From contig NW_026262604.1 in NCBI RefSeq assembly GCF_021869535.1, forward strand, positions 1,488,001 through 1,552,000: a DNA stretch of 64,000 bases, read 5' to 3'. Positions 12,774 to 35,745 of the stretch are shown one piece after another. Position 1 is the first letter of the stretch; the number at the start of each line of letters is the position of its first letter. The position numbers and the translations under genes were made by a program. The notes under the pieces were generated by a model. The model did no database searches, was not told where the DNA came from, and saw only the letters and a list, made by a program, of their open reading frames with translations. The stretch comes from Mytilus californianus. Taxonomy: Eukaryota.

Positions 12774-12850
12774 CTGGATGTTATGAATGTACTGACCTTA
12801 GCATGTTCCATATGTTGACCTGACTGATCGCCGGTAATTGACCGTTATGG
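12774..12850 (-). other. Candidate non-coding 5' UTR exon of the P450
   Basis: Strong donor CAG|GTAAGT at 12774/12773 would pair with the acceptor at 11534-11533 just upstream of the ATG. The 5' boundary is a guess. Confidence 0.4.
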
Positions 12851-13280
12851 TGTAGTTTATAAAATAGTAGCTTTTTTAAAAAACTTGCCGTCTAATAGCT
12901 GATTATATTGAAAATTGTTTTTACCATTGTAGTTTCATCCATTTAGAATGGTCCTTTTCACAAATTACGTAGTGTTGAATTTTATAAGTGTGAAACGAAA
13001 TAAAACCAAATGAAACATAATGGACAGAAGGGAAAGAAATGGAGCAATCAAAGATAATAATAAAAAAAAAAAACAACAATGCCACGGAATTGTTTAGTGG
13101 TGACCTTTAAAGGCAAATAAAAAATGAATGAAAGATATCGAAAAATATATTCGCTCCATAAATAAATTGTTGTGTATACCAACCCATAAGCATACCACGT
13201 CAACATCAATAAACAAAGTTTGCTTCATATATATGTGAAAGTTTAACGGTCTGGGCTATTATGCATACAACCACTTTAAT

Positions 13281-13285
13281 TATAT

Positions 13286-13332
<47 letters not shown>

Positions 13333-14082
13333 CGTCAGTCCGTCATTCCGTCAGTCCGTCAGTCCTGTTTCTTGTCATCGCAACTCCTCTCAGACCACAC
13401 AACAGAATTTCACGAAACCTTTTTTAATAATAAGGACATACTATGTAGTTGTGCATATCGACAGGAAATTACGATTCAATTCTTTTTCTAGGAGTTACGC
13501 CCCTTTGAATTTATTTACTTTAATGTACTACTGCAACAGTTTGTCATCGCAACTCCTCTCAAACCACACAACAGAATTTCATGAAACTTTTTCAGATATA
13601 TAATAAGGACATACTACGTAGATGTGCATATCGACAGGAAATTACGATTCAATTTTTTTTCCAGGAGTTACGCCCCTTTGAACTTATTTGCCCAATATAC
13701 TACTGCAACCTTTTGTCATCGCAACTCCTCTCAAACCACACAACAGAATTTCATGAAACCTTTTCAGATAATAAGGACATACTACGTAGATGTGCATATC
13801 GACAGGAAATTACGATTCAATTTTTTTTCCAGGAGTTACGCCCCTTTGAACTTATTTTCCCAATATACTACTGCAACCTTTTGTCATCGCAACTCCTCTC
13901 AAACCACACAACAGAATTTCATGAAACTGTGTAGATAATAAGGACATACTATGTAGATGTGCATATTGACAGGAAATTATGATTCGATTTTTTTTTCTGA
14001 TACAATTTTTTTTCTTGATTTTATTTTATTTCTCCAATGACAATGTGGGGACGTGGGGTATGTGAGCGCGCTCACTAAGGTT
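13281..14082 (+). mobile_element. Non-autonomous Helentron/DINE-like (HINE) element with internal ~170-bp tandem repeats
   Basis: 5' palindrome TATATCCC.CGCAACGAGTTGCG.AGGGTATA, then a (GTCC/GTCA)n microsatellite. About 3.6 repeats starting 13372, 13541, 13713, 13881. 3' hairpin GTGAGCGCGCTCAC. Flanked by CTTTAATTA on both sides. Confidence 0.75.
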
Positions 14083-15299
14083 CTTTAATTAAGATATCCG
14101 ATTGTAGTACTAATTTATCGTATGATATGTAGAAAATTACGTCCGATCGGAACAAATCTTAGCTCAAGTACTAGTAGTTTCATGCATATCAGCCCTGATG
14201 CCTAATGGTGTCAGGGACTAAAACGAGAGGATTTGTTTTTTTTATATCAAAGAAAGCCTCTTATGATCGGATTAGGTCTTTCATACGATATGAAACAAAC
14301 GAGCATCGTTCGTTAAAGGATCTCTCATGCTTTATTACTTTCTGCAAAATTTGGTTCACATTCGCTGTGTAAATCGGCCTATTATCAGATTTGGGTTACT
14401 GGGTTGTATGGTCTGTTGTTTGACTGTTATAGTTGGACTTTACCAACAGCACACCTTACGGACTTAGGGGGATGAGTAAGGGCCTGAAAACAGTTATAAC
14501 AAACACAGTGAAGTAGGTTTTAGAACTTGTATCTTCAAAAGCGCATGAGAAAGTCATGTATAATTAATAACAATATAATAGTATATAATGCAAATAATAG
14601 AAACATCTAATTCATATAATTTTACAATATAATTGATCAATTAATATCTTTGGTACACACACTTTACGTTAATGCATGAGCATATGCATTTTAACTGACG
14701 AACACGGATGCTTATAATATTTCTTATAAATAAAAGCTTATTTAGCATTCAAATATATGAGCAAGATGCGGACTAAATCTTAAATGTATGAGCATAATGC
14801 AAGACCTAATATTTGAACCTAACGGAGCATAAAGAATGTGCTGAACAGCATAAAGTATTGAATGCATAATATCTAAACAATGGACATGAATAAACATGTT
14901 GAATTCTTTTATCTTTCGAATTATAAACATGGTAGAGCAAATATTGCGCTTGTAAAAACTTAAACTATATAAAACCTATAATCAATTCCGACAATGAGCA
15001 TTGGTTGAGAAATATTCGAAATCGAGACAAACTTATCATTACGAAACTAATCGTGAATATTCAAATAATATAAATATTAAACAATATAATATGAAATGGG
15101 GAAACTAGCTTTTTAAATATATATGCTTGCTTTGTATAAAAAATTCATAACTCGTAATAATATAGGACTAAACGACAAGAATAGTTTACGATAAATAATT
15201 ACTTATTAAATTAACCTTCACATGTGAAAATTACGCATAACGCGTTTATTACATAATCAACATCTTATCCTTGCGGAACTGACCTTAATTCTTATTAAG

Positions 15300-17556
15300 C
15301 AGAGGCGGATCCAGGGGGTGGTCACCCGGTGCCGGTGACCACCCCCTGGGTTTGCAAAAATGGTGCACCATGTACCCAAAAATTGTGAACCTTGAACATT
15401 TTGAAAAACAAATTCTTTGATTAAATCAATTTTTCTATCGTAATCACCAGTCATAAAGTTGTCATTACTTACCTTAAGACGAAATACATGTACCTTGACA
15501 TGTATGTTTACACAATGAACATGTCATCAACGATCGCTAATTACTTGGTCGATTTCTTCGATGTTAAGGTGTAAAAATGAAGAGACAGTCCTCAATCTTA
15601 GATGTTTTTAGCAGGTAATTCATACTTTTTACATTACGTTTATCTAAATTTTTAAAGTTTGTATAATAACTTTTCTCGACCAATAATGTTTTTTTACTGT
15701 GGTGCCAAAATTCAAATATAATTTTAAAGTTTTTAAGTCACATAAATATTCTATATTGAATACCCCCGTTTCTATCATCTGTTTGTCTAAAAGTTCCGAT
15801 CATTCCAATTTTTTAGTAACTTATACCCTCTTTCCTTCAGGAAACGCCACAAATCAGCCCCTCTGAAGTACCAACGACTTGTAATGGACCTAGCATTGAT
15901 ACGAACAAAAGTGATCAGATTAAATAAACAACCCCCGACTTACATATAAGTACAAACGACATTGGTTTTGTAAAGCAATCAACACGTATATTAACAAACG
16001 AAGAGAAATTTAATTTGATAAGAAATCATTTCAAACCCGGAATACACTATAGGGGGCCAGCTGAAGGACGCCTCCGGGTGCGGGAGTTTCTCGCTGCATT
16101 GAAGACCCATTGGTGGCCTTCGGCTGTTGTCTGCTCTATGGTCGGGTTGTTGTCTCTTTGACACATTCCCCATTTCCATTCTCAATTTTATAACTTTCAC
16201 ATAAAAATATATGCAGGAAAGAACAGACTGTTTCAGCTGAATTGACTGAATCGCTATGATCGGCTAGTGTACTCAGCTTCAAAAGAAGGAGCTTACTGCA
16301 TATACTATGCTCTGTTTGGGGTTGATAATTTGGGGACATTATCATGAAAATTCAAACCTGGAATACACTATAGGGGGCCAGCTGAAGGACGCCTCCGGGT
16401 GCGGGAGTTTCTCGCTGCATTGAAGACCCATTGGTGGCCTTCGGCTGTTGTCTGCTCAATGGTCGGGTTGTTGTCTCTTTGACACATTCCCCATTTCCAT
16501 TCTCAATTTTATAACTTTCACATAAAAATATATGCAGGAAAGAACAGACTGTTTCAGCTGAATTGACTGAATCGCTATGATGGGCTAGTGTACTCAGCTT
16601 CAAAAGAAGGAGCTTACTGCATATACTATGCTCTGTTAGGGGTTGATAATTTGGGGACATTATCATGCAAACAACTAACAGATATGGCACATGCAAGTAC
16701 AAGACTTAACGATCATTTCGGCCGTGATGAAAAATCATGTAAAAAAAGTAATACTGAAGCTAGAGCAAAAGCTCAACTTTTTCTTGACAACATTGAGCAA
16801 AGGACTACTGATATGCAAACATTTATTGATAGAGTAATGAATGAACGTATAAAAGCAAACAGAACTGTTTTGAAATCTATATGTAAGTGTGTTTTGCTTT
16901 GTGGCAAGCACAATCTTCCATTAAGGGGCCATAGGGATGATGCAAAACATGTTTCGGACAGAAGTTTCAATTCCGGGAATTTTCAAGCACTGATTGACTT
17001 CCGTGTAGAGTCTGGGGACTCTGTTCATAGAACCTTAAACCGTTTCTTGATTTTTATAACTCTGACTTGCCTAGTCCATGTAGAATTTCTTCGGAAGTAG
17101 ATAGGTGGTTGCATTTCTGGAAACATACCAAAGATACATTGCCAAAGTCAGCTGCTGAAACCATTATGAAATGCAACAAACTTGATTATCCGAACATTTA
17201 TGCTATTCTCAAAATTGTTTGCACAATGAGTGTAACAAGTTGTGAATGTGAGCGTTCGAATAGTGAGCTCGGGTTACTAAAAACATTTTTACGTGCAACA
17301 ATGGGCCAGGATCGACTAAATAGACTTGCACTGATGCACGTGCATTTCAATTTAGATTTAGGATTTGATGTGATCGTTGACATGTTTGCACGCAGACATC
17401 CAAGAAAAATGAAATTAGAATCAATTTTATAAATCATGTGTAACTTGTGTATTCTATAGTTGTAACTATTTTCATGATATCAATAAAAAAAATTGAATTT
17501 TAATTTAAGATTTCAAAAGGTGATCACCCCCTGACAAATTCCTGGATCCGCCCCTG
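15300..17556 (+). mobile_element. Internally deleted hAT (Tip100/Zaphod-like) DNA transposon
   Basis: TIR CAGAGGCGGATCCAGG / CCTGGATCCGCCCCTG. Transposase pieces: TTF-type finger (LVYSASKEGAYC), LPLRGHRDD...NSGNFQALIDFRVESGD, and the dimerisation domain YPNIYAILKI...CECERSNS...TMGQDRLNRLALMHVH. Middle of the transposase is missing. Confidence 0.9.
16030..16675. repeat. Tandem duplication (~320 bp x2) inside the hAT, each copy carrying a short interspersed-repeat insertion
   Basis: 16031-16350 is nearly identical to 16352-16670. The inserted ggggccagctgaaggacgcc...ccattctcaatttta is the inverse of 34296-34435. Confidence 0.85.
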
Positions 17557-20500
17557 TTAAGTATGAACAAGCGATAAGTTAAATTATCCTTTCCAACATG
17601 CGAGCGTAAAACTAAATTTTATAACGCGTTTAAAAATACCCTTGAGTACAGAAAGTTTGTGTAGAATAAACCAACCTTTTTTTTTAACATATATACATCT
17701 ATTTACACTGATCGAGAAACAACAATTTGATCTTAACTTCTTTACTTGCAGAACTCATAGATATTTAATTTCAACTTACTAAATGAAATGGAAACGAAAC
17801 TTTACGAAGTTTCATGATTCAATTGAATAAAATAATGAAAGAAACATATTAACTTTGAATAATTAAAATACTTGACTCACCTGAAAACGGTTATAACAAA
17901 CACAGTGAAGTAGGTTTTAGAACTTGTATCTTCAAAAGCGAATGAGAAAGTGCCACTTTTGAGACCGAAATTCACTTGTTCGATTTTGCGTTACTGTTTC
18001 AGGTTCGACCAATCAGATTCGTTAAACACCTGAGCCACTTAGTTACCCTGATAATTTGGGGTAAAAAGGGGCGTGGAAATACCTTTGCTGGACAGGACAA
18101 AGAACCCTAATTGACCAGGTTACCTAGACATATGTTGTTTACACAACAACTTGTTTGTGTTTAAAGGACAATAGACTTAGTAAAAAACATGTCTAATTGT
18201 GTCCACTTAGCTTCTCGCTAAACGGTTACATCCTGGTTTGCCCACTTTTAATTACCCCAATTATCAAATGGTTATATAAACAAAAAAGACAAAAGGTTTA
18301 TTGATTGGAAAATTGTATAGTCTGTTCCAGTTGTGTTGCTATTTAATATATAGATATAAGAATATAGATACATATATCTCTGTAAAAATTTATTGGATAA
18401 GTTCGTTTGCAATTGATGCATATTAAAATGTATTTTTTTCTTCCTATATTTGGTTGTGAAATTTTCATTGAATTGATTCTTTGAAGGAGATAACTGATGA
18501 AAATAAATAATAAATTGATTTTAATATATTTTTCAATAGCACTGAAACAACTAACATTGGCAATATTACATAAATATCATTAGCACTGAAATTTATCATT
18601 AATAATGCATTGAATGTAGTATGAATTCTATCGCCATCTTGGATAGTAAAATAGCAGAGAACAATAGGCATCATGATAGGTCCATATTTTTAATCAAGTC
18701 AGCAAAATGTAATGCAGGGATGCAATTAACTAATGCGATTTTTCATTTTAATGAACAAATTTATAAGATTTTAACTTATACATTGTGTAAATACTAATAT
18801 TTTTACAAACGTAGATTATTTTTGCTTGATTTTCAAAGTTTTTAAATTGGCATATTAAGGGTGGTAACTCTGGAAATAGTACATTTTCTAAAAGAATCTA
18901 CATGAAATTTTGCTATTTTATGTTTTAGCAAGAACAAACGAATGGTGACACTATCTTTTCTTTTGATATTCTGAAAGCATTTTCTAAAAGCTATCTTCTC
19001 GTATTTTATTTTACAATTCTATCATTAAGTTTATCTTCTACTCACATAATGATGCTTTTTCCTGTATAATCCATACACAATGTGTCATTTTGTCACAACC
19101 TGTAGCTTGAGAAAAAGGCATCATCTGTGTCTCATGAACACATTCCCCGTTTATTTTATTTAGCATGAAAAAGTTATAGATATCCTTTTTCTCAAATTTT
19201 AAATATTTATTTCACTCTAACCTAAACAAATTTGTTTTCATAAATTAAGATAAAGATGAATAGATAGAAATCTGAACACAATTATTGTCCTTTGTTAGTT
19301 TATAAATATTTTTTTTTTTTTATTTTATTTTATAATCCCATTTAAAATTGGTATGACATGTATCTCTTTTTTAATGTACTTATAGTTTTTATTATAATAT
19401 TTTGTCCTTTTTAAATCTCAATATTAATAATCTTATAAAATTTATCTCTTTTCTAATTATATTCATAGTTTTTGTTTTAATATTTTCCCTTTTTAAGTCT
19501 CACTATTGAATCAATTTTCAATCAAAAATATGTATTCTTTATAAGATTTTACAGGTGAATTACAGGTAAATAATATGCCTTAATTAAAGAAACAGACTTT
19601 AACTGTTAAAACAACAATTCCCCCTATGTTTATATATGCAAGTGATTAAAAGTGGGCAAACTAGGATGACACCCGCTAAACATCTTAAATTGATAAAAAT
19701 AATGCCAACAAAGAGAAAATCTAAAGTGACAAATGCCAAAGTAAATATCTGTTAAATTTGAACTTCTTATCTTAAATATATCGAAAATATAAAAATGATT
19801 TCCTTCAACAATAATGAACGAATATAAAACAAAAATACGTTTAATCAATACTGCAGCTTCGAAATGGACTTTAGATAAATAAAATATCTTAAACTTATTC
19901 CTTTTTGCTGAAAACTAAATTTTCACAAAAATATAAAATGAGGTCTAAAATGACTCCATGACACTATCATAATATTTTTTAAAATGCGTCTGTTACCGTG
20001 GTTCTGTGTTTAAAATCGAAAATACACTAATCTGCTTTTGAACTTAGAATGGCACTTAATGAATGTTATGAACATATTGCCAAATTTTTTTATTCCCCCC
20101 CCAAAAAAAAACTGTCGCAGGGGCCAAAAAATTTCATGATTTTGTCTCTCTGCACGGTTATATAAAAAATGTTCCTTGTTCAATTTTAAGGATGCTTTGT
20201 GCTTTTTGAATCATTCGGTCCATTCTATAATTTGAGGTAAAACACGTATACATTAAACTTTTATGTCCATATGACAAAATCAAAAGTTCAACACATCAAA
20301 CGAATGGATAAGAACTGTTATATTCCTGACTTGGTACAGACATTTTCTTATGTAGAAAATGGTGGATTAAACCTGGTTTTTATAGAGAAATTCGATCAGC
20401 TGACCATTATAAAAATATGTATCAATGCTTACTCTAGCGCACACAGCAGCACAGGTGTTTTTTCCGCTACGACATCAAAAAAACCTCTTTGAAGTCTGCT

Positions 20501-20624
20501 GAAAAGGAACCCCGCACAAAGACAAGTTATAAAAGACATTAGTATTATTCACTGCAATTCCTGTCTGAAAAAGAAAACAAACAGACTCACCTTAATTTCT
20601 TTTCAACCCCCCCCCCCCTTTTGA

Positions 20625-21245
20625 TTCTACCTGATTGTCAGCTTTACGTAGCCGGAACGTTTAGAAATCATGAAATTGTCAAAGTCGTTTCCGACACAAT
20701 TGTTAATGACTCTGATACGGATGTGATTGTTCTGTGTGTACATTACTATACAAACAAATGACACATACAAACGAGTTGTGGGTGCAGACGGGGAACATTA
20801 ACAGTGTAACATGTGTATAGGACTGGAAAAAAATTCATTTGCCTATTTACCAACTATGGAGGGACCTGATGGGGGGGGGGGGGGGGGGGGGGTCTCATCA
20901 ATAAATTTCCATGATCACGGATAACGATAATATAAAAAAAAAAATCTGTAAAAAAACGGATCACGATAGCGAAAATGCGCCGATCACGAAGAACGAAAAT
21001 AACCCACTAGGCCCCTCACTATGAAGTTGCCATTCCAAACTATTTGTAAACAGTTGCCTTTTGTACAAGCTCTTACCGTATGAGACACAACTTATTCTCT
21101 GTTTGGAGTAGTAGGTAAGAAATCAGTCTAAAGGACTTTGAATGATACGCACTATGATTTCAGTGGTTTTCGGGACTTCCGACAAAGACGAAGCCCGTGT
21201 ATGTGTACGAAAGTTAATTTCAAAGCTTTATGATCAGATACAAAA
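20625..21245 (+). pseudogene. Degenerate XPG/PIN-like nuclease fragment typical of Academ-type DNA transposons, split by a poly-G MITE (~20850-21020)
   Basis: LPDCQLYVAGTF...DSDTDVIVLCVHYY...ELWVQTG, then remnants of CKQLP...VQAL...LFGV.GKKSV...ARVCVRKLISKLYDQ. Multiple frameshifts. The Academ assignment is from memory of the family. Confidence 0.5.
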
Positions 21246-21959
21246 ATATTTCACCGTGATATGAATAAAAAATGAAATTCCCAATCATATTCATTGACAG
21301 ATGAACCAGAATAAAGTCCTTGCTGAATTCTGTTGTTTGGACCTCTTTAATGGTATTGGCTTTATTGTAATTGTTTGCGAGGTATTTATTGGTTTTTATA
21401 TATCACGTTCAAGGTAGTAGACTTCAAGTAAAAACAATATTTGTCATTCTTTCCAGAGTTTGAATGTCACCAGGCAAGGTGACTATTGTAATATTAATAG
21501 AATATGTGTTGATCTTGGATTATGGAACAAGTGTTTGAAAACCGTCAATATTCATATCAATGACAATTTGAAAGTTTATTTTTACATTTTCGAGATAACT
21601 CATTGTTAATTGATTTTAAAAGCTGTCTGTATCTGAAATTTAACATAAATTGCTACATTTATCGTTACATTTAGAAAAAAATATAGAAGAACAAAATTTA
21701 CATATTATTTGATCTTTGACATAATTTTATGCAAAACTGTTACCACATTTCTTTTTGACGATATTGATATTTGGAAAGTAATTATTTTGACGAATCCAAT
21801 AATATATAATATAGCCATATATTATGTTTGACAAATAAATTCTGAAAATATCAAGTCTGGTCACCGTACTATCAATTTAGTCTACTGAATCGACGTTAAC
21901 CGACACACCACCTGTCCCATCAATCCAAACGGAAAAGAAAAAAAAAACGGTCGTACGTA

Positions 21960-22395: not shown

Positions 22396-22478
22396 CTATT
22401 TTAGAAGCTACTTTTAAGGATACTATTAGTCATGCTCTTCATTGTGACGACAAATAAAGATTGTAAAGTTAAGATAAC

Positions 22479-23210: not shown

Positions 23211-23269
23211 GGTGTATTTGCTTGGAATTGGTCTTATACCAATGGGATCTATACCTTGACGACTTGTGA

Positions 23270-23645
23270 TGTCTTTAATCGATGTTAACGATACTTTATA
23301 CTTATTGTCCAAGACATTAAACCATTCCCTGGCTATGCCTGTCAGGTGGAACGGGAGAATCAAGATGGCTGACACCTCAGGCATGCCCTGTAATGTTACA
23401 AATGCCATAAACATGGCCCAGAATTCTGTGGCATTGCCCCTACCACTAAACGACTCGAAATTCACATGGTATCTGTGACCATGGTTACTAGCAAAACCTG
23501 GTGGTGGTGGTATTATGTGTGGCCCAGTGTTCACAGTGTTAGATGAGGAACCTGCTGTGGCTGTTGGTAATGGGGCTGTGTTGACTATCTCTTCCGGTTG
23601 TTCATTGTCTGTGGCATTAGTGGTAGCATTATTTGGTGCAGGCAT
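23270..23645 (-). pseudogene. gag: Ty3/Gypsy gag N-terminal fragment
   Basis: MPAPNN...FESFSGRGNATEFWAMFMAFVTLQG...ILPFHLTGIAREWFNVL...SLTSIKD is a capsid-like motif. It begins ~70 nt after the LTR end/PBS and is truncated by a jump back into U5. Confidence 0.8.
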
Positions 23646-23713
23646 ATTGATGTTCTTTGATCTCAACCAGTACATACGTTAATTCTTTGGGATCTTTCAG
23701 TCCTCCAACCAGT

Positions 23714-25608
23714 TGTCAGAATTAGAGTTTCTGTGTGTTTGCTTGGAATTGGTCTTATACCAATGGGATCTATACCTTGACGACTTGTGATGTCTGGAGC
23801 CAAGGCCTGAAACAATATTCAATAAAACTTGAAATAGTTTTATGTCTTTATTTCCAAAGAGCGCATGTAAAAGTCTAATTATAATAGCAGTTATAATATA
23901 AAATGACAAACAATATTCATAAGTATAAATCAATATAATAATGCAAGTATAATTCCATTAGATAATGCAATAGACCTATCATAATTAAATATTTCATAAA
24001 TATTCTGAAACATGAACATAATGTGTATCGCAATACTTAATGTATGAGCAACATCTCATTTCTTTTGCATAAATATTCTAAACATTCAAATATAAACATG
24101 GTAGAGCATTTTTAAGGTATTTGGTTAAACTTTATTCTAAACACTGAGAATTAAATAAAGGAATAATATAAACGTCTTTCTTATGAAACTCCAATTCAAA
24201 CAATGAGGTTACTTATCTAACCATATCTCCGTTAAGGGGGAATAACTCTTTTTTTAATCTGTTAAGGAGGAATAACTCTTTTTTAATCTGTTAAGGGGTA
24301 ATAACTCTTTACACAATAAAAAAAAGGGGGGGGGGGGCAATTGTAGAATAGAAACTTTTCTATCATGAAATCTTGTTACGCAATGAAATATATATAATAC
24401 TTTGTTGTGGGGAACTAGCTATAGAATATGTCTTACATGTATACTTGCTAAAAATAAGTTTACGCAATAACGTGCTATTTATAGAAAAATAACAAACCAT
24501 GCGTTTGCTGACAATAACATGTCAAATAAACTGCACATCAAGAAATCATGCCTAAAAGGCTTTCGAATTATAAAACCTTACCATTGAAAACATTATAACT
24601 TCAATGCAATAGTGAATTTAAGGTGAATTATTATTTCTTATTTCTTGTCAGTGCGACAAAACAGGCGGATGTTATAAATAACTATAAAAACATAAAATAA
24701 GTATACCATTTTCCGATCAGAACCAAAAACTTTTCTTTAAAAAACACATTATTTACAACTATTTACAATTATAGCATAAAGAAAATATCTTGATAATTAA
24801 CTTCTTTATAAAGATAATAAAAGATGAAAACTCTTATTAAATAAAATAACTATGAAAGTGCTGAAGATTTTACAAAAGGAAAATAAACCTATTTCTATTC
24901 AAAAAGAATAAAGCATTAGCAAATTAATAATTTTATCAGAAGTTACTTTTAGGTTATGAAAACCTTTAAACAAAATGCTTAAGATTATATTTAACAAAAT
25001 AAAATTAACTTTGCTTACCTGAAACAATATTCAATAAAACTTGAAATAGTTTTATGTCTTTATTTCCAAAGAGCGCATGTAAAAGTGGCGCTTTTTGGAA
25101 ATAACTTTTTAGATTCGAATTTGTGGACTGTTTCAGGTTTGTCCAATCAAAATTAACATTTAATCAAAAACCATGACAACTTTAGTCTAATTGACAGAAA
25201 ATGGGTAGGGTCATAAGTGACGCTTAAGACTAAAAAATATCTTAATTACTTATGTAATCCCGCTATCAATGTTTACTCTATACCCTATTTGAGCCGGATA
25301 TTAACAATAGAAACAATCCGAAAAAAACCTTATTACATGTCGGCTTCACTTTAAAAATCATATCTGTCAACACATTCTGACCATTGTCCGATATCTTCTT
25401 ACGTAATCTATATACAACACAATAAGGCTTACTAAAAGGAAATATGTTTGTGTGAAAATCAAAACTAAAGCTATTAAAATGTCTGTCCAGAATTGAAATA
25501 AAATGTTTAACTAAAATAATTTGCTTTAAACTTAGAACTTTTCCAATTTTTACTGAAATTAAGAATTTCACAAAAATAATAAAATCTGTTCAAAATGATA
25601 CCATGACA
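23714..25608 (-). mobile_element. Long terminal repeat (LTR1, 1895 bp) of the env-bearing Gypsy element
   Basis: Termini TGTCA...TGACA. Preceded by a PPT (AAGTAAGGGGGAG, ~25610-25622) and followed by AC-TGGTTGGAGG (PBS-like) and gag. Confidence 0.85.
25080..25155 (-). promoter_or_regulatory. Putative LTR core promoter (ATTGG/CCAAT box, conserved AACCTGAAACAGT, Inr-like CCACTTT with +1 at 25086)
   Basis: The same motif order and spacing occur at 17945-18015 in the divergent LTR. The TSS is inferred, not observed. Confidence 0.55.
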
Positions 25609-26084
25609 ACTCCCCCTTACTTCAGTTGATTTCGACCCGAAATCTTGACATATTCCTGTAAAATACTAAGTAAAGTAGGGGTTAGTCAATTACACATACA
25701 TGATAACTGTGTATTGTTCCATACATACAAAAGTAAACATACAAAATATATATACATACCTAAATATTCAATAATTGATCATAAACACAGGTCCTGAGTT
25801 ACAAGGTCTTTAATTCAAAACAATAAATGCATCTAACTATTTCTGAAAAAAGTTGTCTAAAAAAATACCTTATCACTTAAAACAATTTGGAAAATATTCA
25901 AGAGGTTGAGGATTCAGCACTACTTATGGAATAGAACTAATTATTCGGTGAAATGAAATATATTAGACAAAAATTACTGCAGAAATACAGTTTAATTTAA
26001 GATGTTAAAATTCATTATTAAAATCTAATAGTTGAACAATTAAAAAGAAATCATAAGAACAATTTGCTTTTAAAATAAAATTGA

Positions 26085-28274
26085 TTATTCTAAATGTGGA
26101 AATAAGGAAACAGAAGTTTGATTTGAAGCTTGTTGCACTTTTTGAATAGTTCGTGGTGGATTCAAAACTGAAGCAAACCCTTGATGTGTAACTAATACAT
26201 AAGAATCAAATGTCTGAGCTAATATTTTGTTAATTCTATGCCTTTTAAATACATTAAGATCAATTGTAGTAGGAATGTTCACAGTCTTGTTGGTAAGCTT
26301 GTTTGTAATAACAAATGATGAAATAATAACATATAATTTACTCTGATGAAAGGATGAAATTGATATATCATCTACAGAAGGTATACTGTCGTAATATGAT
26401 GGACACACAGATAAGCTAAGCAATGGTACTGTAACACAGTCAGCACCTGATGTAATCTCTAAGTAAATGGTGGTGCATTTGGACTTTCTTGATCGATACA
26501 AAAAACAAATCAGTACAGATAAAAATATGAATACAATTACACTCAAAATCACTGAGGCATGTAGCCAAGAAAATTGAGAAGCAAAAAATGTCTCTAGTTC
26601 TGATGCACTTGTAGTAGGTGGTGTGAGTTTCTTATATATAAATGATGGTATTTCTTGAGATTTTACTTTTGAGACTTGTTGTATGATGTGGAGGATAATT
26701 GCTTATCACTAAAATATTCTTGCAACAATGCTAAATTTACAGGATATTGAACTGACACTTCTTGTGTGTTGTTGTAACATTGGACTAATCTTGGTGATAA
26801 ATATAATGATTTTGTGGAAAGTGAACACTTGCATGGTAAACTGACAACACAATCTTTGCATCCTGGAAGGAGATTTTGCTTGTTGTGACAATTAATAGCA
26901 AGCTTATCACTTTGATACACCAATACTGATGTGGAGCTCAATTCAATGATGTCATGTGTTAAATGATTTTCCAAAAATCTGAAATTGCACAGGCTTTTGA
27001 CCTGCTTCTTGTCATTGTTGAATAGTGCAATGGTGCATTGTTTAACATGCGATGGGACAAGTGCAATATTGAAACTGCATGTGATAACACTTACATGCTG
27101 GCAATTAGTTAATTGGTTAGAAGATAAGGGGAGATAATAATCATGCTGGTGGGTAAGAGCAAGAAAATCTGGTAAATCAAGCAGTTTAGTTGCATGCTTC
27201 AGAGTGTTATTTACTGGAACAGGTAGAGAAATTACTTTAAAAAGCTGAAGAGGTTGTGAATGTGATGAAACTGGAAATCTGAGTGTTAGGTATAGGATGG
27301 AGTGGTTACGCATAAACATAAAGTTACGGTTAGTATAGTAGAAGGAAGGATGTAACTGTGTTAGATAGAATCCTGGATACGATTTTGTTGATATTCCTTG
27401 AACCTTATGGAGTGCATGTGTTAGGGTTTGTTTTAGCAATAATAGTGGTGAGACTCTGCCCATGACAAGGCTTTGCACTGCGGCTTGGAACTGGTCCAAA
27501 TTTCTTCGTAATATATTGCCTGTATTAGTGAGGTTAATGAGTATTTGGAAAATATTAAACATGGATTGCTGTAAGGTAACTAATGACAAGTTCATTGAAT
27601 GAGCCAATGTGGCTATCTCTTTTGAATTGATTTGAATTCCAGACATCAGATTGGTTGTCCTATTGTCCATTACTGACATATAGGATGATAAGTGGTCACC
27701 ATGCTGGTGTAGAACGTCAGATAATAATTCAGTTCTCTTATTGAGTGCGTTTATGTGTCTAGCAAGTAAATTTACATCACTCATTGTTGATGTACCAAAA
27801 AGACCTTTAGCAAGTGAGCCAATGAATGGTAAAAATGAACGAATATTTCGTTTTGATGACAAAATAGTACTGTGAGGAATTAAAGTATGAATGGCTTTAA
27901 TTGTATCTAATAAGTGCATTTCTGTAGTTTTATGTAAATAACTTATAAAATTTACATTGCGTTAAATGTATTACAATCATGAACATGTGTTTGTCTCTGA
28001 CATAAAGGTAACTCTTCTGATAAATGAATGTTATGGGGAATTTGAACCTTAAATGTATGAAGCCATGATTCTTTGGCTAAAACAGGTTTGCCTCTTCTTT
28101 AAAGATGACCCCATAATTAATTATTTGGATTATGTCTTTTTCTACAGTATAATCAGCACCAACTTGAACAAAACACAGGACCACCATTAGAAAGTACATC
28201 AGCCCATGCCAACTAGCCACGAATTTACCTACAAATATATTAAACAAGGGAAAAATTAGATGTGATGAAATCAA
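26085..28274 (-). pseudogene. env: Envelope-like (class I, baculovirus-F/errantivirus-type) glycoprotein ORF, frameshifted
   Basis: Hydrophobic signal (LMYFLMVVLCFVQVGA), NYGVIF, basic cleavage site KRNIR|S followed by fusion-peptide-like SFLPFIGSLAKGLFGT, heptad region and Cys-rich ectodomain. TM segment VILSVIVFIFLSVLICFLY then RSRK. Breaks near 28077, 27950 and 26660. Lies between integrase and the PPT. Confidence 0.8.
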
Positions 28275-28688: not shown

Positions 28689-30790
28689 CTAGTTTTTTAC
28701 TCTTTTGAAGAAAGATTTCTTTCTTTTGCCTTTCTGGGTAAATCTCAGATTTATTTCCTCTAACATGGGAGGGTCAAAACTAGTATCTGGTTCCCATGTG
28801 CGTGTCTTATCAAGCCATTCTACTCTCATGAACCTTTTACCATTGCAAAATTTACCTCTTTTAATTTGATGAAAATTAAATGTTTGATTATCAATACGAG
28901 GCTGATTTGTTTGATTTTCTATAACATTTTCTTGATTAACATTATTTTCAGGTTGTAAGTTAACATTTGGCAGTTCATCAAGAGGTTCTGAATTATCTGC
29001 AGTGTTTTCAGGTTCCTCTTGCACTTGTGTTTGTGCTTGAGGAGCTACATTTGCATTTTGATCTGGTGCATTGTTTTGGTGTTGTTGTACCTCAAACCGT
29101 TTGCGATGAATATTTGGGTCATAGTAGCGCCTAAGATTTGTGGCATTTATCAATGATTTCAATTCTTTATTATTAGATATTTCTTTCAATTTGTATGTGA
29201 AGTTTTGACCTTTTTCCATAATGCGATAAGGACCAGCATGTTTGTCATGTAATTTGCGAGACTGACCTTTAGGGACTTTATTTGTAGTAATCAAAACTTG
29301 GTCTCCAACAGAAAAATCAGGAATATTTGATTTAAGGTCATGTCTTTCTTTATCTTTTTCTTTTTGTTGCGCATCTTTTTGTTTTGCAATTTCATGCGCA
29401 ATTTTTAAATTTGCCAAAAAGCCTTCTATATAATCTTTGACATCTTGACATAAATTGTCTTTTGGTTCTAATGCTACATCAAAAGGAAGTCGCATTTCTT
29501 CTCCAAACATCATATAGAAGGGTGAATATCCTGTTGTATTGCAGGATGGTGATTTTCTATATGCCATCATTATAAAAGGGAGAAGGGTAGGCCAATTTGA
29601 CTGGTCCTTATCACAATATGCTCTTAAACATGCTGCTAATGTGCTATTTTGACGTTCAACAGTACCATTTGTATTTGCATGATATCAACTTGAATGGTGT
29701 TGTTTAACCTAGAAAACTTCACAAATTGCTTTGATAACCTTTGTCATGAACGATTGACCTCTATCACTAAATAAAATTTTAGGACTGCCAAAACGGGCAA
29801 AAACTTCTGAGCATAATATGGTTGCTACCTCTTTTGCTGTTTGTGTTTTCATAGGGAAAGCTTCTGTCCAACGAGTGAAAGAATCAACTACTACTAAGAC
29901 ATGTTCAAAACCTTGTGGTGTTTTTGACAAAGGACCTAGTATATCAACATGCCAACGATGAAATCTACCAACATGAGGCATTGGAGACAAAGGTGGTTTG
30001 TTGGGGTTGTAATTTCTTTTGGCACGTTGACACCTATCGCAAGTTTTTATGTATTGATTTACATTTGCATGCATTTTTGGCCAATAATATTTTTCCATCA
30101 TAGAAGAATAGACCTTATCAGCACCTAAGCGGCCTCCGCCTAGTAAGGAGTCATGATATGAGTGGAGAGCCTCTTCTCTAAGACAAGTTGGCAATGCTAT
30201 CTGTTTAATTTGTCTTAGTTCCTTAGGTAACTTCCTACATCTTCTCTGATATAAATAATATAAAAATACCATTAGAAATAGAGTAATACGGGCTTTCAGA
30301 TACAATTGCACGTCTGAGTTTCTCATCCTCAGGAAGTTCCCTATCTTGCAGATATTTAATGATATCAGAAAAATCAGGACATTGTTTTTGTCTTTCAAAC
30401 AGAGAGATAGGATTAGCTAAGTTTTCAGGAAGTTGATCAGCTTCTAGGGCAGATATTATAGGACAGTTTTCAGGAGATTCATCATCATAGTAAAAGGTAG
30501 TGTAAGTTTGCCAACCATTTGGTAGGCAGTCAGATTCAGAATCTGGCTCAGAATCTTGTCTAGCGTTTGTTACAGATCGTATAGCCGGTGCCTTATCATA
30601 TGGCCTACGGCTTAAACAGTCTGCAACTACATTGCGTTTGCCTGGTCTATGAATGATATCATAGTCTAAGTCTTGTAACTTTAGTGCCCAACGTTCTAGT
30701 CTCCTTGATAATTTGGCAGTTTTTAACCAAGTGAGTGCTCTGTGATCAGTTACTATAGTGAAGTGAGAGTTAGCCAAATAAGGACGGTAG
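28689..30790 (-). pseudogene. pol: Gypsy pol: RNase H C-terminus, tether and integrase
   Basis: HFTIVTDHRALTWL...RWALKLQDLDYDIIHRPGKRNVVADCLSR. Integrase zinc-binding region ...YYWPKM...CDRCQ, core WHVDILGPL...VVVDSFTRW...SDRGQSF, TGYSPF and GPY motif. Several frameshifts. Confidence 0.93.
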
Positions 30791-32939
30791 CACTACAAAA
30801 GTCAAAAAGTCTGAAAAGACCAGTTTTTGTCTGAATTTGCATGAATTTTTACTCGACATTCTTAATTTGTCTGAATAATTTAAAAAAATTCTTGACATAG
30901 TATGAATTTGTCTAATAAGGTTCTTGATTTTTCTTGACAAGTGTCTTGACAGTATGAACATTGTCTTAAAATTTCTCGACACTTCCTGTATCATCTGATA
31001 AGAGTCTGGATTAGTCTCGACCAATTCTTGACTGTCTTAAATTTGTCTCGATCTGTCTTGACATATTCTTGACATTCTTACTAATGTCTGAATATGTCTC
31101 GACATATTCTTGACATTCTAAATAATGTCTGAATATGTCTCAACACATTCTTGACAGTCTTAAAAATGTCTTGACACTATCTCAACAGTATAAATTTCGC
31201 CTGAAATGTGAACAGACTTATTCTGCACTGTTTATGACATTCTATTGCTGTTATATACTCCTTTTTATTATGGCTTAACTAAACTTTGAAGAATCAAGGA
31301 TTAATTTGGTATATATAGTAAGATACCCTTTTGGTGCAACTAAGTTGTAATACCCTGAATAATCCCCCATATAGTTTAATTTTGATTTATTTTTATTAAA
31401 CATTTAAGTAATTGTTTTCACTTGGAATATAAGTAGAAGGTATTGACAAACAGCATTTAGATTTTTGCCGTTCGCAAAACTGCCAGTCAAATTTGCTTTA
31501 CTAAAATAGGTGTCTTGTATCTCTTTTGGACCCCACAATTCATCTTTTGGGTTTGTGTAGCTAAAAAAAGAGGGGGGGGGGGGGTGGGGGTGGGGGTGGG
31601 GCTTTCGTTTAGGTCAAAGAATTTGTTCCCATCTTGATTCAAAAACCTTATTCATTTTTTAGAACAACCCAAAAACATTTTTTATTCAAATTTGAGTGTT
31701 GAATTTTATAATTTTTTATCAAAAATAAATATTAATAAATAATAAAAAAACTCCTTCCTGAAAAGAAAAAAATGTTTAGATCTATATTATGCATGTTTGT
31801 TTGAGAACCATTTCTATAGAAATCATTGATGGGACCCATTATAAATACATTTTTTTTATTATTCCTGGAGTAGATAATAATTTTCTCTTAATCTTTGGGA
31901 ATTATTCAATTTGTTTTTATGTTAAAATAATTAACTTCATAATTTTGATGAGGAATATCCATTTCAATTCAATTTGTTTTCATCAAAATGATGATTTTCA
32001 TTTTCATCTATCAACAAACTTTTGTAGTGGCATGGTCGGTCAACTGATAAGTTGTATGGCTGATTACAGGTAAAGTTATAACTTCTATTTGACAGTTGCG
32101 TGTACTCTGGGGTGTGGAATACCTTAATTTTATGGGGAACATCCTGTCCATGTGTAATACTTGATATATTCCAACAGATGACATTACACAAATTTTTCTT
32201 CTGTTAAATGAATGATTTGTATATCATCATAATTTGCTATTTATATAAACCACATTTTTGTATAATAATTATTTACCATATCAACATTGAATATTATGAA
32301 TGTAGAATGAAATATGTCTACAGTATAATTGGTTTGAATCATTTAATTTATAAGATTTAGGAATCAAAATTTGTAATTATTTAAAAACCCACATTGAAAT
32401 TGTTTTATATCAACACAACCACATTTGAATTATTTTATACTTTAGATTTCATAGCCATATTTGCATTTGTAAAAATATTTATATACCCAAATTTTTAATT
32501 ATTTTACATGCCCAACTTTTATTTTTGTTGTAAAGAAGTGTAACTTGAAACAACAGTATATCATATAAAGAGAAATAAAGATTAAAGTTATATCATGAAT
32601 ATTGGTCATGATTTGTAAAACTCAGAACTGTCAAGTAAATTTAAGACACGATTCAAAATGTTCAGAATATGTCAAGCCATACTGAGAAAAAATATGAATG
32701 TCGAGAATATGTCGAGAAATTTCAAGACAGTTTTCAAATGTCAAGAATTTGTCAAGAAATTTTAAGACCATATTCAGAATGTCGAGAATATGTCGAGTAA
32801 ATTTCATACAAATTTAATATAAATGAGAATTTGTCAAGAAAAATTAAGACACAAGTCATACTTTTGGAGAATGTCGAGTAAAAGTTCATGCAAATTAAGA
32901 CAAAAACTGGTCTTTTCAGACTTTTAGACTTCTGTAGTG
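30791..32939. mobile_element. Non-autonomous CACTA (CMC-EnSpm) element inserted in RNase H
   Basis: Termini CACTACA...TGTAGTG with ~70-bp imperfect TIRs. 3-bp TSD TAG (30788-30790, 32940-32942). Many CTTGACA/CTCGACA subterminal repeats, inverted between the two ends. Excision restores ...GVESYRPYLANSHF. Confidence 0.92.
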
Positions 32940-34295
32940 TAGGATTCAACGCCTCTAATTATGGCTAAACACTCTTTTTCAGAAGTATAGTACTTTTTCT
33001 CAGCATCACTCAGCGCTTTACCACCATAAGCGACAACATACTCTCTATTTTGATCATCTTTCTGTCCCAAAACATAGCCTATTGCTTGATCATATGCATC
33101 ACAAGTTAAAATAAAAGACCTATTTGGATCTGGGTAAGATAGAATTGGTGAAGAAAGTAAAGCCTTTTTCATTGTTTCAAATGCTTGTTGACATTTAGGA
33201 GTCCAGTTAAAAGGTGCATTTTTGCGCAGCAATGCTGTCAAAGGAGACACAATATCTGAATGACCTTTAATAAAACGACGGTAGTAGTTAGCCATACCTA
33301 AAAAAATCTGACCTGTTTAACTGTTTTTGGAACAGGGAACTCACTAACTGCACTCGTTTTTTCTAAGTCAACCTGAACTCCATTTTTGGAAATGATGTGG
33401 CCTAAAAATTTGACTTGCTTAACGGCAAAATTACATTTTGTTGGCTGTAGACGTAAATTTGCCTGTTTTAACCTATCAAAAACTTGAGTAAGGTGTTCAA
33501 GATGTTCTTCAAAAGTATTGCTGAATATTAAGATGTCATCTATGTAGACTAACAAAAATTTCCAATTTAAACCTCTAAATATTTGAGTCATGAGACATTG
33601 AAAAGAAGTGGCTGCATTCATTAAGCCATAACTAAGGCGATTCCATTCATAAGCAACAGATTGTGTGACAAATGCACTTTTATGTTTTGTCTCTTCATCA
33701 AGTGGAATTTGCCAAAACGAACTTTTAAGGTCTAAATTTGTAAGGTAAAGAGGTTTTGCTTCTCCTAATGTGTCAAAAACACTTTCAATATGGGGTAAAG
33801 GAAAGTTCATAGGTACTGTGACCTTGTTGACCTTGCGATAATCTATCGCTAGGCGCCATGTACCTGTATTTTTCTTAGGAATCATTACTACTGGTGACAA
33901 CCAATCAGAATTAGACTCCTCTATAATATTATGTTTCAATAAATCTTGAATTTGGCTTTCCATTTCCCTTTTAACTTGAGGCGACTTTCTATAAAAATGT
34001 TGTTTTACAGGTCGTGCACCAGGGACAGATACAATTTTGTGTTTGTATACGTCTGTTTCACCTAATTCTGTTAAATTTGTGGCAAAGCTTGTTCTGTTTT
34101 CTTTCAAAAATGATTTTAACTTTGCTTTCTCTATTTCTGTTAAGTCAGATTGTGTTAAATCAAATTCTAGGTCAGATTCTGAGACTTTACTTGGTGTGTT
34201 TACTGATGAAACAGATGGAGAGCTTTCATCAAAGTTCTGTATGAGCTCAGTATTGACTTTTTCTACTTTTGCATTTTCTTGTGTGCTCTTAACCT
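32940..34295 (-). pseudogene. pol: Gypsy pol: reverse transcriptase and RNase H N-terminus
   Basis: WLSPVVMIPKK...WRLAIDYRKVN, LDLKSSFWQIPL, YGLMNA, YIDDILIFS, FLGHIIS. RNase H part [18 protein letters not shown]...SEKECLAI. Frameshift near 33297. Confidence 0.95.
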
Positions 34296-35279
34296 TAAAA
34301 TTGAGAATGGAAATGGGGAATTTGTCAAAGAGACAACAACCCGACAATAGAGCAGACAACAGCCGAAGGCCACCAATGGGTCTTCAATGCAGCGAGAAAA
34401 TCCCGCACCCGGAGGCGTCCTTCAGCTAGCCCCTAAACAAATATGTATACTAGTTCAGTGATAATGGACGTCATACTAAACTCCAAATTATACACAAGAA
34501 ACTAAAATTAAAAATGATACAAGACTAACAAAGGCCAGAGGCTCCTGACTTGGGACAGGCGCAAAAATGCGGCGGGGTTAAACATGTTTTTTGAGATCTC
34601 AACCCTCCCTCTATACCTCTAGCCAATGTAGAAAAAACAAACGCACAACAGTACGCACAGTAAAACTGAGTTTAAGAGAAGTCCGAGTCCGATGTCAGAA
34701 TAGGAAACAAAAGAACATAAACAAAATGACAATACATAAATAACAACAGACTACTAGCAGTTACTGACATGCCACCTCCAGACCTCAATTAAACTGATTG
34801 AAAGATTAGGTCTTCATCATATGAACATCAGGCACAATCCCTCCTGTTAGGGGTTTAGTATTATACCATCATAAAATATATGAGAAGAACATAACCCGTG
34901 TAATGCCAACAACTGGTTTTAGAATAAATATGTTTAATTCCGATGCAAAGACCCTATAAGTGAATCAATATTAAAGCTAAAATATGCAATCTTTAATGAC
35001 CTGACAACAGTATCGTAACTATATCCCTTCTTAATAAGTCTGTTTAAAGGTTTTGTTAGCTTTTGAGGTGAATACTGACATTTTTGTGCTTTGTAAAGAA
35101 TATCACCATACAAGCTTGGATGTGAAATACTCGAACGTATAAGATGTCTGCATGTTGAGTTGTATTTACGAATGATGTCCTTATACCGATGATAAAATTT
35201 AGTAAATGTTTTGATTAGTTTATGATATCGAAAACCCTTGTGTAATAATTTTTCAGTAATACATAAATTTCTCTCGCTA
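34296..35279 (-). mobile_element. ~980-bp interspersed repeat (SINE-like) inserted into pol between protease and RT
   Basis: Contains the CTCCTGACTTGGGACAGGC...GCGGGGTTAAACATG core of the abundant family. The pol sequence resumes on both sides (DKNVR...RAHK/AKVEKVN). Possible imperfect TSD AAGATT/AAGGTT. Confidence 0.75.
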
Positions 35280-35745
35280 AAATCTTACATTTTTGTCAGT
35301 TGGGTTAAGTAAACTTATATATGCTTTACCATTTTTAACAGTAACCAATGACTTTGCTGCTATTATGTTTAGATGCTCTATATTTGGAAGTGGCTCTAAA
35401 AGTACAGTTGAACCTGGTTGTTGATGTGAAACAGAGACACTAATTAAAGTTTGAGAAAATTTTGGTATTGTTACTGCCTTAAGAGTTCTTACTAAACCTT
35501 CACTTATACTAAGTTTACTTATTGTAGTAACTGTGTGATTTTCTACAATTTCTAAAGTATTGTTGTCAAAATTTAATTTTGCTTTGTTGTTTTTCAAAAA
35601 ATCAACACCTAGTATTAAAGAGTGGTGTAATGGTGGTAAAACATGTACTACAGTTTTGAATTTTCGATCTCCTATTTTAATTAGAATGTCTAATTTACCC
35701 AAAACTTTAACATGTTCACCATTAACAGCTATTACTTTAACATCT
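35277..35745 (-). pseudogene. pol: Gypsy aspartic protease, C-terminal half
   Basis: VKVIAVNGEHVKVLGKLDI...HSLILGVDFLKNNKAKLNFDNNTL. The catalytic DTG, gag and 5' LTR are absent (truncated at ~35745). Confidence 0.85.

Follow-up and report, generated by a model that had tools for sequence, protein, structure and literature searches.

Retroelements are expected to lose introns, because their template is processed RNA. A segment on the minus strand of a 64,000-nucleotide stretch of the Mytilus californianus genome (assembly GCF_021869535.1, contig NW_026262604.1, positions 1,488,001 to 1,552,000; hereafter the window) raises the question of how a long terminal repeat (LTR) could carry an intron-like kilobase between two nearly identical copies of a short repeat. 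We asked whether this segment (LTR2) is an LTR, whether its layout is shared with other elements, and which replication scheme could maintain it. Positions are numbered from the first letter of the window, and the features of the locus are summarized in Table 1.

Structure and homology of LTR2

A repeat search and a self-BLAST of the window revealed a 72-nt direct repeat (14483-14554 and 17880-17951; 70/72 identical, E=5e-29). It starts with ACTTTC and ends with TTTTCAG; the upstream copy is followed by GTGAGT and the downstream copy by GCCCTT. The last shared G is the first base of both continuations, so the unit proper is 71 nt. The start-to-start distance is 3397 nt; by arithmetic alone, subtraction of a nested hAT element (2257 nt) and its 5-bp target duplication gives 1135 nt, as stated in the earlier note. 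The promoter motifs GATTGG and AACCTGAAACAGT lie at -62/-63 and -53/-54, respectively, from the repeat start in both LTR2 and a second LTR of the window, LTR1. An 18-nt block of the intron-like segment matches at 15/18 positions, while the repeats of LTR1 and LTR2 match at 51/73.

The earlier note placed this LTR at 14368-18230 with a single nested transposon, and these bounds require correction. Position 18230 lies inside the terminal inverted repeat of a second nested element. The LTR starts at 19963 (TGTCATGG, homologous to the LTR1 start) and ends at 14383 (..TCTGATA, homologous to the ..TCTGACA end of LTR1). The termini are TGT..ATA, one change from the TGT..ACA of LTR1, and a 4-bp target duplication is present. 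No polypurine tract was found upstream and no primer-binding site downstream, as expected of a solo LTR.

Table 1. Features of LTR2, LTR1 and the adjacent retroelement genes in the window
Positions	Strand	Feature	Details
14383..19963	-	LTR2, solo LTR of a Ty3/gypsy-type element	About 1.86 kb of LTR sequence proper; holds two nested DNA transposons
19964..19967	-	Target-site duplication, upstream copy	ATAG
14379..14382	-	Target-site duplication, downstream copy	ATAG
19674..19963	-	LTR2 U3, distal piece	Aligns to LTR1 25608-25303
18224..19673	.	Nested non-autonomous element, hAT-like by duplication length	1450 bp; 32-nt terminal inverted repeats; 8-bp target duplication GTTTAGCG
17952..18223	-	LTR2 U3, promoter-proximal piece	GATTGG (CCAAT box, -63) and AACCTGAAACAGT (-54)
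17881..17951	-	LTR2 upstream repeat copy	Proposed exon 1 and R, from the transcription start (A of CA) to the 5′ splice site
17875..17880	-	Proposed 5′ splice site	CAG|GTGAGT
14555..17880	-	LTR2 intron-like segment X	About 1064 nt of its own (73% A+T), interrupted by the nested hAT element
15300..17556	+	Nested hAT transposon remnant	Inverted repeats beginning CAGRGGCGGATCC; target duplication TTAAG; internal 321-nt tandem duplication; Dimer_Tnp_hAT E=3.8e-12
14484..14554	-	LTR2 downstream repeat copy	Ends in the proposed 3′ splice site (..TTTTCAG|G); proposed R at the RNA 3′ end
14383..14483	-	LTR2 U5-like tail	101 nt, 55% A+T
23714..25608	-	LTR1	U3 25608-25087, repeat 25086-25019, X 25018-23875, repeat 23874-23807, tail 23806-23714
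25610..25623	-	Polypurine tract	Just upstream of LTR1
23700..23711	-	Primer-binding-site-like TGGTTGGAGGAC	Two bases after LTR1
28701..35741	-	pol (protease, reverse transcriptase, RNase H, integrase) of the element upstream of LTR1	Broken; outer bounds from tblastn
26283..28220	-	env, homologue of F-type envelope fusion proteins	Broken
23271..23675	-	gag, 5′ fragment downstream of LTR1	Truncated

To test homology, the three pieces of LTR2 were aligned separately to LTR1. They align colinearly along its whole length (186/251, 399/558 and 544/772 identical, i.e. 70-74%), with scores of 105, 152 and 181 against shuffle maxima of 84, 66 and 96. LTR1 is a true LTR, with a polypurine tract and env on one side and a primer-binding site and gag on the other. 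The gag fragment is homologous to the gag start of an M. edulis locus (L002) and to Pinctada gag. The Pfam matches of pol on the minus strand (RVT_1, RT_RNaseH(_2), Integrase_H2C2, rve, SH3_Tf2-1 and a weak gag-asp_protease) follow the order protease-RT-RNase H-integrase. The longest env ORF piece had no Pfam hit at E<=0.01, but it matched an M. edulis “envelope fusion protein” (95%) and many homologues carrying PF12259. These env findings apply to the owner of LTR1; since LTR2 is solo, it cannot be told whether its owner carried env.

No LTR pair occurs in the window itself, and no paired copy of the LTR2 family was obtained. However, L002 has the LTR1 family as a 5′/3′ LTR pair (95.5-97.5% identical in the two aligned blocks) with a 4-bp target duplication (GTAC) and the same primer-binding site as LTR1. 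LTR pairs with the same internal layout were found in M. coruscus (locus L003, 97.7%) and Pinctada (locus L004, 97.5%), both also with a polypurine tract and a primer-binding site (TGGTGGAG.. in L003, L004 and L011, the last a locus of unknown host). The interpretation of LTR2 as an LTR in the earlier note is thus supported.

Conservation of the layout and concerted evolution of the repeats

Five sequence-diverged lineages, including the gastropod Haliotis, share the layout, which supports the suggestion of the earlier note that it is an inherited feature of a lineage. The order is a U3 promoter (495-567 nt), the unit (67-71 nt; 56 nt in Haliotis), an AT-rich segment X of 0.6-1.7 kb beginning with GT, a second copy of the unit ending in a pyrimidine tract plus AG, a tail of 93-113 nt and the primer-binding site. 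In the bivalve LTRs X is 73-80% A+T, against 52-68% for the tail. AATAAA is at unit position 23-24 in three bivalve lineages (23 in LTR1) and position 12 in Haliotis, but is absent from both copies of the LTR2 unit, so that family would need another signal. Beyond the LTR1/LTR2 pair no shared motifs of note were found in X.

The two units evolve in concert. Within an LTR they match at 68/68, 69/71 (LTR2), 67/67 (65/69 in one LTR), 68/68 and 55/56 positions, generally 97-100%, while between lineages they match at only 33-51 of ~70 (48-70%). Between the M. californianus and M. edulis copies of the LTR1 family, U3, X and tail are 95.0, 94.7 and 94.6% identical, whereas both units are 68/68. One exception should be noted: in L003 one of the four copies differs by 4 positions, although the LTR pair is 97.7% identical.

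The limits of the unit are consistent with a transcription start and a splice junction, as read from DNA alone. TATAAA lies at -33 in L003 and -30 in Haliotis, and GATTGG at -58 to -63 in LTR1, LTR2 and Pinctada; the unit begins with A, mostly after C. The upstream copy is followed by GTAAGC, GTGAGT, GTTAGT, GTAACT/GTAAAT or GTAAGA, and all units end Y-rich plus AG. Branch-point-like YTNAY motifs were recognized by eye 14-30 nt before the AG. Folding of the five repeat units gave energies within the range of shuffled sequences (z from -1.3 to +0.3), so no structured element is indicated.

An intron-less form was also identified. In M. edulis L009 (same family as L003, U3 94.9% identical) the 5′ LTR has one unit, with the upstream context of copy 1 and the downstream context of copy 2. 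This form is predicted by the model proposed below, but could equally come from DNA recombination between the two copies. L010 and L011 (hosts unknown) have plain LTRs of 700 and 967 nt, each with one R-like stretch (CCAAT, AATAAA, then a pyrimidine tract plus AG about 40 nt later) and no X. They may be long-standing intron-less relatives, but an env tree (neighbour joining, no support values, midpoint root) places them in another cluster, so neither gain nor loss can be called. In Ruditapes (L005) the contig ends just after env and the upstream repeats could not be resolved into an LTR. Logan contigs carrying env or gag relatives stop at the LTR start or inside gag; one of them (L008) ends 31 nt into a CACTT.. 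string resembling a unit start, which we do not use as evidence. A search of Rfam with 13000-27000 (E<=1) gave no match, and ARAGORN detected no tRNA in the window that could identify the primer.

A proposed replication mechanism and its alternatives

We hypothesize, with moderate confidence, that the unit is the first exon, running from the transcription start to a 5′ splice site, and also serves as the retroviral R. In the 5′ LTR the leader would be spliced from the upstream copy to the AG at the end of the downstream copy, so that the full-length RNA begins unit-tail-PBS. In the 3′ LTR the poly(A) signal inside the upstream copy would be skipped, likely because the adjacent 5′ splice site binds U1 snRNP, and the RNA would be cleaved and polyadenylated inside the downstream copy, which removes the acceptor and lets X survive at the 3′ end. 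Minus-strand strong-stop DNA, a copy of tail plus exon 1, would transfer to the downstream copy at the RNA 3′ end, and synthesis would run back through X, the upstream copy and U3. Every new LTR would therefore be U3-unit-X-unit-tail, with its downstream unit freshly copied from exon 1. This would explain why the copies evolve in concert, why the repeat starts exactly at the RNA 5′ end and stops exactly at the exon junction, and why exon 1 must carry a branch point, a pyrimidine tract and an AG at its own 3′ end. If polyadenylation instead used the upstream copy, or the two copies recombined, the progeny LTR would be the plain U3-unit-tail form, which cannot regain X.

Homogenization by a strand transfer, as proposed in the earlier note, remains an inference without RNA evidence, although it is the only simple replication scheme we could find that explains both the concerted evolution and the exact limits of the repeat. 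The note did not state that it works only if the 5′ leader is spliced. Moreover, the 5′ and 3′ LTRs have the same sequence, so their different handling has to come from context (cap proximity, exon definition), which is assumed. A post hoc hint is that the base before the downstream copy is G in 4 of 5 lineages, although G is ~13% locally; a copied cap would give this.

An alternative that we consider possible but unlikely is that unit-X-unit acts as a 1.2-kb R, copied faithfully without leader splicing, while gene conversion or selection keeps the units alike and X may or may not be spliced for expression. This needs no difference between the 5′ and 3′ LTR, and the unit is indeed under strong constraint. 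It gives, however, no copying of one unit onto the other; the divergence of units between lineages, set against their identity within LTRs, excludes selection on a fixed sequence, and gene conversion would not set sharp limits at a start site and at a GT in five lineages. Strand transfer from an unspliced leader onto the terminal copy would add a second X, and no LTR with three units was seen. Less probable still is a separate promoter for the downstream copy, which would then be the only R, with the upstream copy and X merely part of a long U3. TATA-like strings do lie 20-33 nt before the downstream copy in LTR1, LTR2 and Pinctada, so a second start site cannot be excluded, and RNA started there would have the same sequence as the spliced leader. 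Yet such strings are expected by chance in AT-rich X, L003 and Haliotis have no TATA at this place, and the canonical TATA and CCAAT boxes sit before the upstream copy, which would be free to diverge but does not and whose conserved GT would have no role.

An old DNA-level accident, either insertion of a foreign X into R with a long target duplication or a local duplication, is very doubtful. A direct repeat flanking an insert is the classic mark of an insertion, but no known transposon makes 56-72-bp duplications, X has no terminal repeats or coding capacity, and simple inheritance cannot keep the copies identical while the rest of the LTR diverges beyond BLAST recognition. Finally, promoter motifs and a GT-AG segment also resemble the 5′ end of a host gene, but this reading is refuted by the TG..CA-type ends, the target duplication, the homology to LTR1 and the LTR pairs in three other genomes.

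Relation to known retroelements and significance

Envelope-carrying Ty3/gypsy elements of non-insect metazoans (“ancient errantiviruses”; eLife 2026, PMC13524379) have the same pol domain order, an F-type envelope gene after pol and a tRNA primer-binding site, and are present in Mollusca; that survey does not mention introns, splicing or internal repeats in LTRs. In foamy viruses the major splice donor lies inside R, close to the poly(A) signal, and U1 snRNP bound there suppresses LTR polyadenylation (PMC3694450). Their LTRs have one R and no acceptor, and the intron is the coding region, whereas here the matching acceptor and a second R copy would lie in the same LTR. Penelope-like elements keep a spliceosomal intron a few tens of bases after the start site inside the terminal repeat, and its loss hurts expression in Penelope (PMC2377424), which offers a reason why X-bearing LTRs persist. 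That intron is 75 bp with no duplicated exon, and those elements have an RT fused to a GIY-YIG endonuclease, no integrase and no true LTR cycle; the rve integrase and true LTRs of the element described here show that it is not Penelope-like. DIRS/Ngaro elements, with split direct repeats, have a tyrosine recombinase and no target duplication, in contrast to the DDE integrase and 4-bp duplications found here. In the Drosophila TART element (PMC1636488) two direct repeats appear to be kept identical by the replication cycle, as is proposed here, but TART is a non-LTR telomeric element whose repeats are kilobases long, lie in the two UTRs and have no splice-site limits. We found no published description of the present layout, although most subscription journals were not covered and this absence is weak evidence.

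These LTRs are 1.3-1.9 kb long, and several kilobases with nested inserts, so a mollusc survey that capped LTR length at 1500 bp would have missed them (PMC6238403). LTR finders may mistake the internal repeat for tiny LTRs.

Penelope-like elements were set apart partly because they keep an intron (PMC2377424). Here a true LTR element appears to keep a kilobase intron in the LTR itself, across bivalves and a gastropod, with a duplicated first exon whose copies evolve in concert. It is somewhat more likely than not that a clade of mollusc envelope-carrying retroelements replicates in this way, through a leader-spliced genomic RNA and with R carried twice. This would be a previously undescribed answer to two old problems, namely which of two identical LTRs polyadenylates and how an intron is kept through reverse transcription. 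The full-length RNA would have been spliced, and so may use the ordinary export route, while the RNA 5′ end and exon junction would be recorded in DNA. It would also mean that every solo LTR of this clade plants a promoter, a first exon and a strong splice donor in the host genome, which could feed chimeric host transcripts.

Extent of LTR2 and its repeated unit

The analyzed window, which contains no N, is part of contig JAKFGE010000012.1 of the Mytilus californianus reference genome (GCA_021869535.1; PMC9710001). All features of interest lie on the minus strand. Related loci (designated L002-L018) are host-genome or read-assembly contigs reached through the proteins encoded in the window and their homologues. 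Nested insertions were never cut out of the sequences, and the pieces that they separate were compared apart. The coordinates of the distinguished features are summarized in the following table.

Coordinates of features in the window and in related loci
Locus	Position	Feature
Window	19963-14383	LTR2, solo LTR (minus strand)
Window	19967-19964 and 14382-14379	ATAG, the four bases outside each end of LTR2
Window	17880-17951 and 14483-14554	72-nt direct repeat of LTR2, 70/72 identical
Window	18224-19673	1450-bp nested element with terminal inverted repeats, flanked by the 8-bp duplication GTTTAGCG
Window	15300-17556	Nested hAT remnant with inverted repeats and a 5-bp duplication
Window	16030-16671	Exact 321-nt tandem duplication (98%) inside the nested hAT remnant
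Window	19963-19707	LTR2 piece aligned to LTR1 25608-25303, 74% identity
Window	18213-17630	LTR2 piece aligned to LTR1 25351-24672, 72% identity
Window	15273-14412	LTR2 piece aligned to LTR1 24586-23730, 70% identity
Window	25086-25018 and 23874-23806	68/69-nt direct repeat of LTR1, 100% identical
Window	23714-35741	pol-env and polypurine tract on one side of LTR1, primer-binding site and gag start on the other
Window	22328-23341 (core 22481-23210)	51-nt tandem array, about 14-20 copies, 98% alike
Window	23179-23274	96-nt copy (98%) of the junction between the end of LTR1 and the primer-binding site
Window	13372-13995	168-nt tandem repeat, 3.7 copies, 92% alike, just downstream of solo LTR2
Window	36677-51000 and 36004-36739	Satellite of about 1.9-kb units in at least 8 copies, preceded by a 166-nt tandem array
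Window; L002	16053-16190, 16374-16511, 58959-59039; L002 12050-12938	Dispersed repeat family of up to about 0.9 kb
Window	9049-10122 (-) and 63225-63818 (-)	ORFs of 357 and 197 aa with no Pfam match
L003	6691-6692, 7842, 13315-13318, 14469	Base just before the unit in the four copies of one element
L004	12708-12758 and 14100-14150; 362-2877	51-nt sequence recurring after the 3′ LTR; tandem array with a period of ~362 nt
L010	3391-4085 / 12708-13407	Plain LTRs
L011	2937-3903 / 12644-13610	Plain LTRs

The direct repeat reported in the earlier note was confirmed (E=5e-29). Read on the minus strand, it starts with ACTTTC and ends with TTTTCAG, after which the upstream copy continues with GTGAGT and the downstream copy with GCCCTT. 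The shared last G belongs to both continuations, so the unit proper is 71 nt. LTR1 contains the equivalent repeat, whose upstream copy is followed by GTAAGC. Other details of the earlier note also hold: the promoter block GATTGG..AACCTGAAACAGT is placed at the same distance from the repeat in both LTRs, an 18-nt block of the intron-like segment is shared at 15/18 positions, and AATAAA is present in the LTR1 unit but absent from the LTR2 unit. The corrected spacing of 1135 nt follows by arithmetic alone from the bounds of the nested hAT element (3397-2257-5).

The bounds of LTR2, in contrast, required correction. Position 18230, which the earlier note took as its start, falls inside the terminal inverted repeat of the 1450-bp nested element, and upstream of this element the LTR continues to a point where the sequence TGTCATGG.. 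is homologous to the first 60 nt of LTR1. The second nested element is a hAT remnant with a Dimer_Tnp_hAT hit (E=3.8e-12), inverted repeats and the 5-bp duplication. The three LTR2 pieces align to LTR1 in order, together spanning nearly all of it, with all three scores well above those of shuffled sequences. The LTR2 end ..AATCTGATA matches the LTR1 end ..AATTCTGACA. There is no polypurine tract before LTR2 and no primer-binding site after it. LTR2 is therefore a solo LTR of about 1.86 kb with a 4-bp target duplication.

LTR identity and the element adjacent to LTR1

Neither LTR has a partner within the window. LTR1 is preceded by a polypurine tract, which follows a pol-env region, and is followed two bases later by TGGTTGGAGGAC and the start of gag. 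The env ORF piece is homologous to F-type envelope fusion proteins of Mytilus, Pinctada, Ruditapes and Haliotis. In M. edulis (locus L002) the same family forms an element with a complete 5′ LTR, the same primer-binding site, a 3′ LTR whose upstream third is replaced by another repeat, and a 4-bp duplication GTAC. The replacing sequence is a copy of the dispersed repeat family, of which two partial copies lie in the duplicated part of the nested hAT, and one further copy lies inside the pol region of the LTR1 owner.

Comparison with intact relatives revealed that pol of the LTR1 owner is broken by at least four frame changes and four in-frame stops, and holds about 3 kb of inserted DNA, while env has at least two frame changes and one stop. 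The gag sequence after LTR1 is only a 5′ fragment. The arrangement pol-env-LTR-gag means either two elements in tandem sharing one LTR or a permuted copy; in M. coruscus, locus L003 shows a similar gag/integrase-repeats-LTR arrangement upstream of its 5′ LTR. The unit of the 51-nt tandem array is a copy of the junction between the end of LTR1 and the primer-binding site (58-nt matches to 23684-23741 at 88-91%), and the 96-nt copy of that junction leads into the array. The 424-aa ORF across this array is an artefact of the repeat. The satellite begins just upstream of the broken pol region, and its alternating unit subtypes (81% against 100% in one segment) suggest a 3.8-kb higher-order period.

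Conserved layout and concerted evolution of the unit

The layout of these LTRs is a lineage trait, which supports the proposal of the earlier note that it was inherited. M. coruscus L003 has an LTR pair with no BLAST similarity to LTR1 or LTR2, yet with the same plan. The same is true of the plan of Pinctada imbricata L004, an element with long gag, pol and env reading frames, and in Haliotis rubra (locus L006) this plan lies just after env.

Layout of the LTRs (X, the segment between the two copies of the unit)
Locus	U3 (nt)	Unit (nt)	X (nt)	Tail (nt)	After upstream copy	Unit ends
LTR1	522	68	1144	93	GTAAGC	TTGTTTCAG
LTR2	~554	71	~1064	101	GTGAGT	..GTTTTCAG
L003	495-499	67	1084	104-113	GTTAGT	ACATTTCAG
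L004	515-567	68	577-586	101	GTAACT / GTAAAT	CAATTTTAG
L006	not defined	56	1746	not defined	GTAAGA	TGTTTCAAG

AATAAA sits at unit position 23-24 in LTR1, L003 and L004, and at position 12 in Haliotis. A TATAAA lies 30-33 nt before the upstream copy in L003 and Haliotis, while a GATTGG lies 58-63 nt before it in LTR1, LTR2 and Pinctada. The unit always starts with A, mostly after C. In the bivalves X is 73-80% A+T, and the tail 52-68%. In Pinctada, the 51 nt that follow the polypurine tract (starting with TTGTCATG, like an LTR start) recur 100% identical right after the 3′ LTR and are missing from the 5′ LTR, which instead abuts the tandem array; this is possibly an LTR-LTR junction remnant.

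Within an LTR the two units are 97-100% identical, whereas between lineages they share only 33-51 of about 70 positions. Selection for one fixed sequence cannot give that pattern, so one copy must be renewed from the other. The unit is also more constrained than its surroundings: between the M. californianus and M. edulis copies of the LTR1 family, U3, X and tail are about 95% identical, yet both units are 68/68, although at 5% divergence about 7 differences are expected over 136 nt.

Replication models and retention of the intron-like segment

We went through the possible replication schemes, inferring all of them from DNA. If the RNA ends after the upstream copy and the leader is unspliced, the layout is copied but the units are never homogenised. 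With an unspliced leader and an RNA ending in the downstream copy, faithful pairing again gives no homogenisation, while transfer of the full strong-stop DNA to the terminal copy would add a second X, which was never seen. If transcription starts at the downstream copy, the upstream copy becomes part of U3 and is free to drift. Of the schemes considered, only one works, i.e. a spliced leader at the 5′ end (unit joined to tail) with polyadenylation inside the downstream copy at the 3′ end. Renewal of the unit by strand transfer, as inferred in the earlier note, is thus the best available model, but it is unproven.

In this scheme the new downstream unit is a copy of exon 1 in every cycle, the limits of the repeat are set at the RNA 5′ end and the exon junction, and X is kept because cleavage inside the downstream copy removes the acceptor of the 3′ LTR. 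It would further explain the odd fact that a first exon ends in a branch-point-like motif, a pyrimidine tract and AG, since its copy has to serve as the acceptor. The same U-rich stretch lies where a poly(A) downstream element is expected. Silencing of the poly(A) signal of the upstream copy by the adjacent donor has a precedent in foamy viruses (PMC3694450). The base before the downstream unit is G in 4 of 5 lineages, where G is about 13%, as a copied cap would give; however, this observation is post hoc, and LTR1 and LTR2 are not independent. In L003 the base just before the unit differs among the four copies of one element (C, G, G after a 4-nt duplication, C), forming a small hot spot at the proposed RNA 5′-end position.

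Envelope-carrying Ty3/gypsy elements have been described in molluscs (PMC13524379), but without any mention of LTR introns or repeats, and a survey of mollusc LTRs capped LTR length at 1500 bp (PMC6238403). Searches for an intron in an LTR found nothing relevant, although the literature that could be searched is incomplete. What appears to be new is therefore the layout of the LTR, and not the type of element that carries it.

The scheme predicts one-unit LTRs, either when the upstream poly(A) site is used or by recombination. Such a form was found in M. edulis locus L009, which belongs to the L003 family (U3 94.9% identical). Its 5′ LTR reads TATA box, unit, then directly the tail and the primer-binding site, with no X, but its 3′ LTR is cut short, so that the route of loss cannot be told. 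Related env-carrying elements from unknown hosts (ENA assemblies L010 and L011) have plain LTRs with one R-like stretch that still ends in a pyrimidine tract plus AG about 40 nt after AATAAA; L010 is flanked by an 18-nt direct repeat rather than 4 bp. In Penelope, removal of the LTR intron abolished reporter expression without lowering RNA (PMC2377424). Loss of X by either of the predicted routes is irreversible, and its persistence in five lineages therefore argues that it benefits the element.
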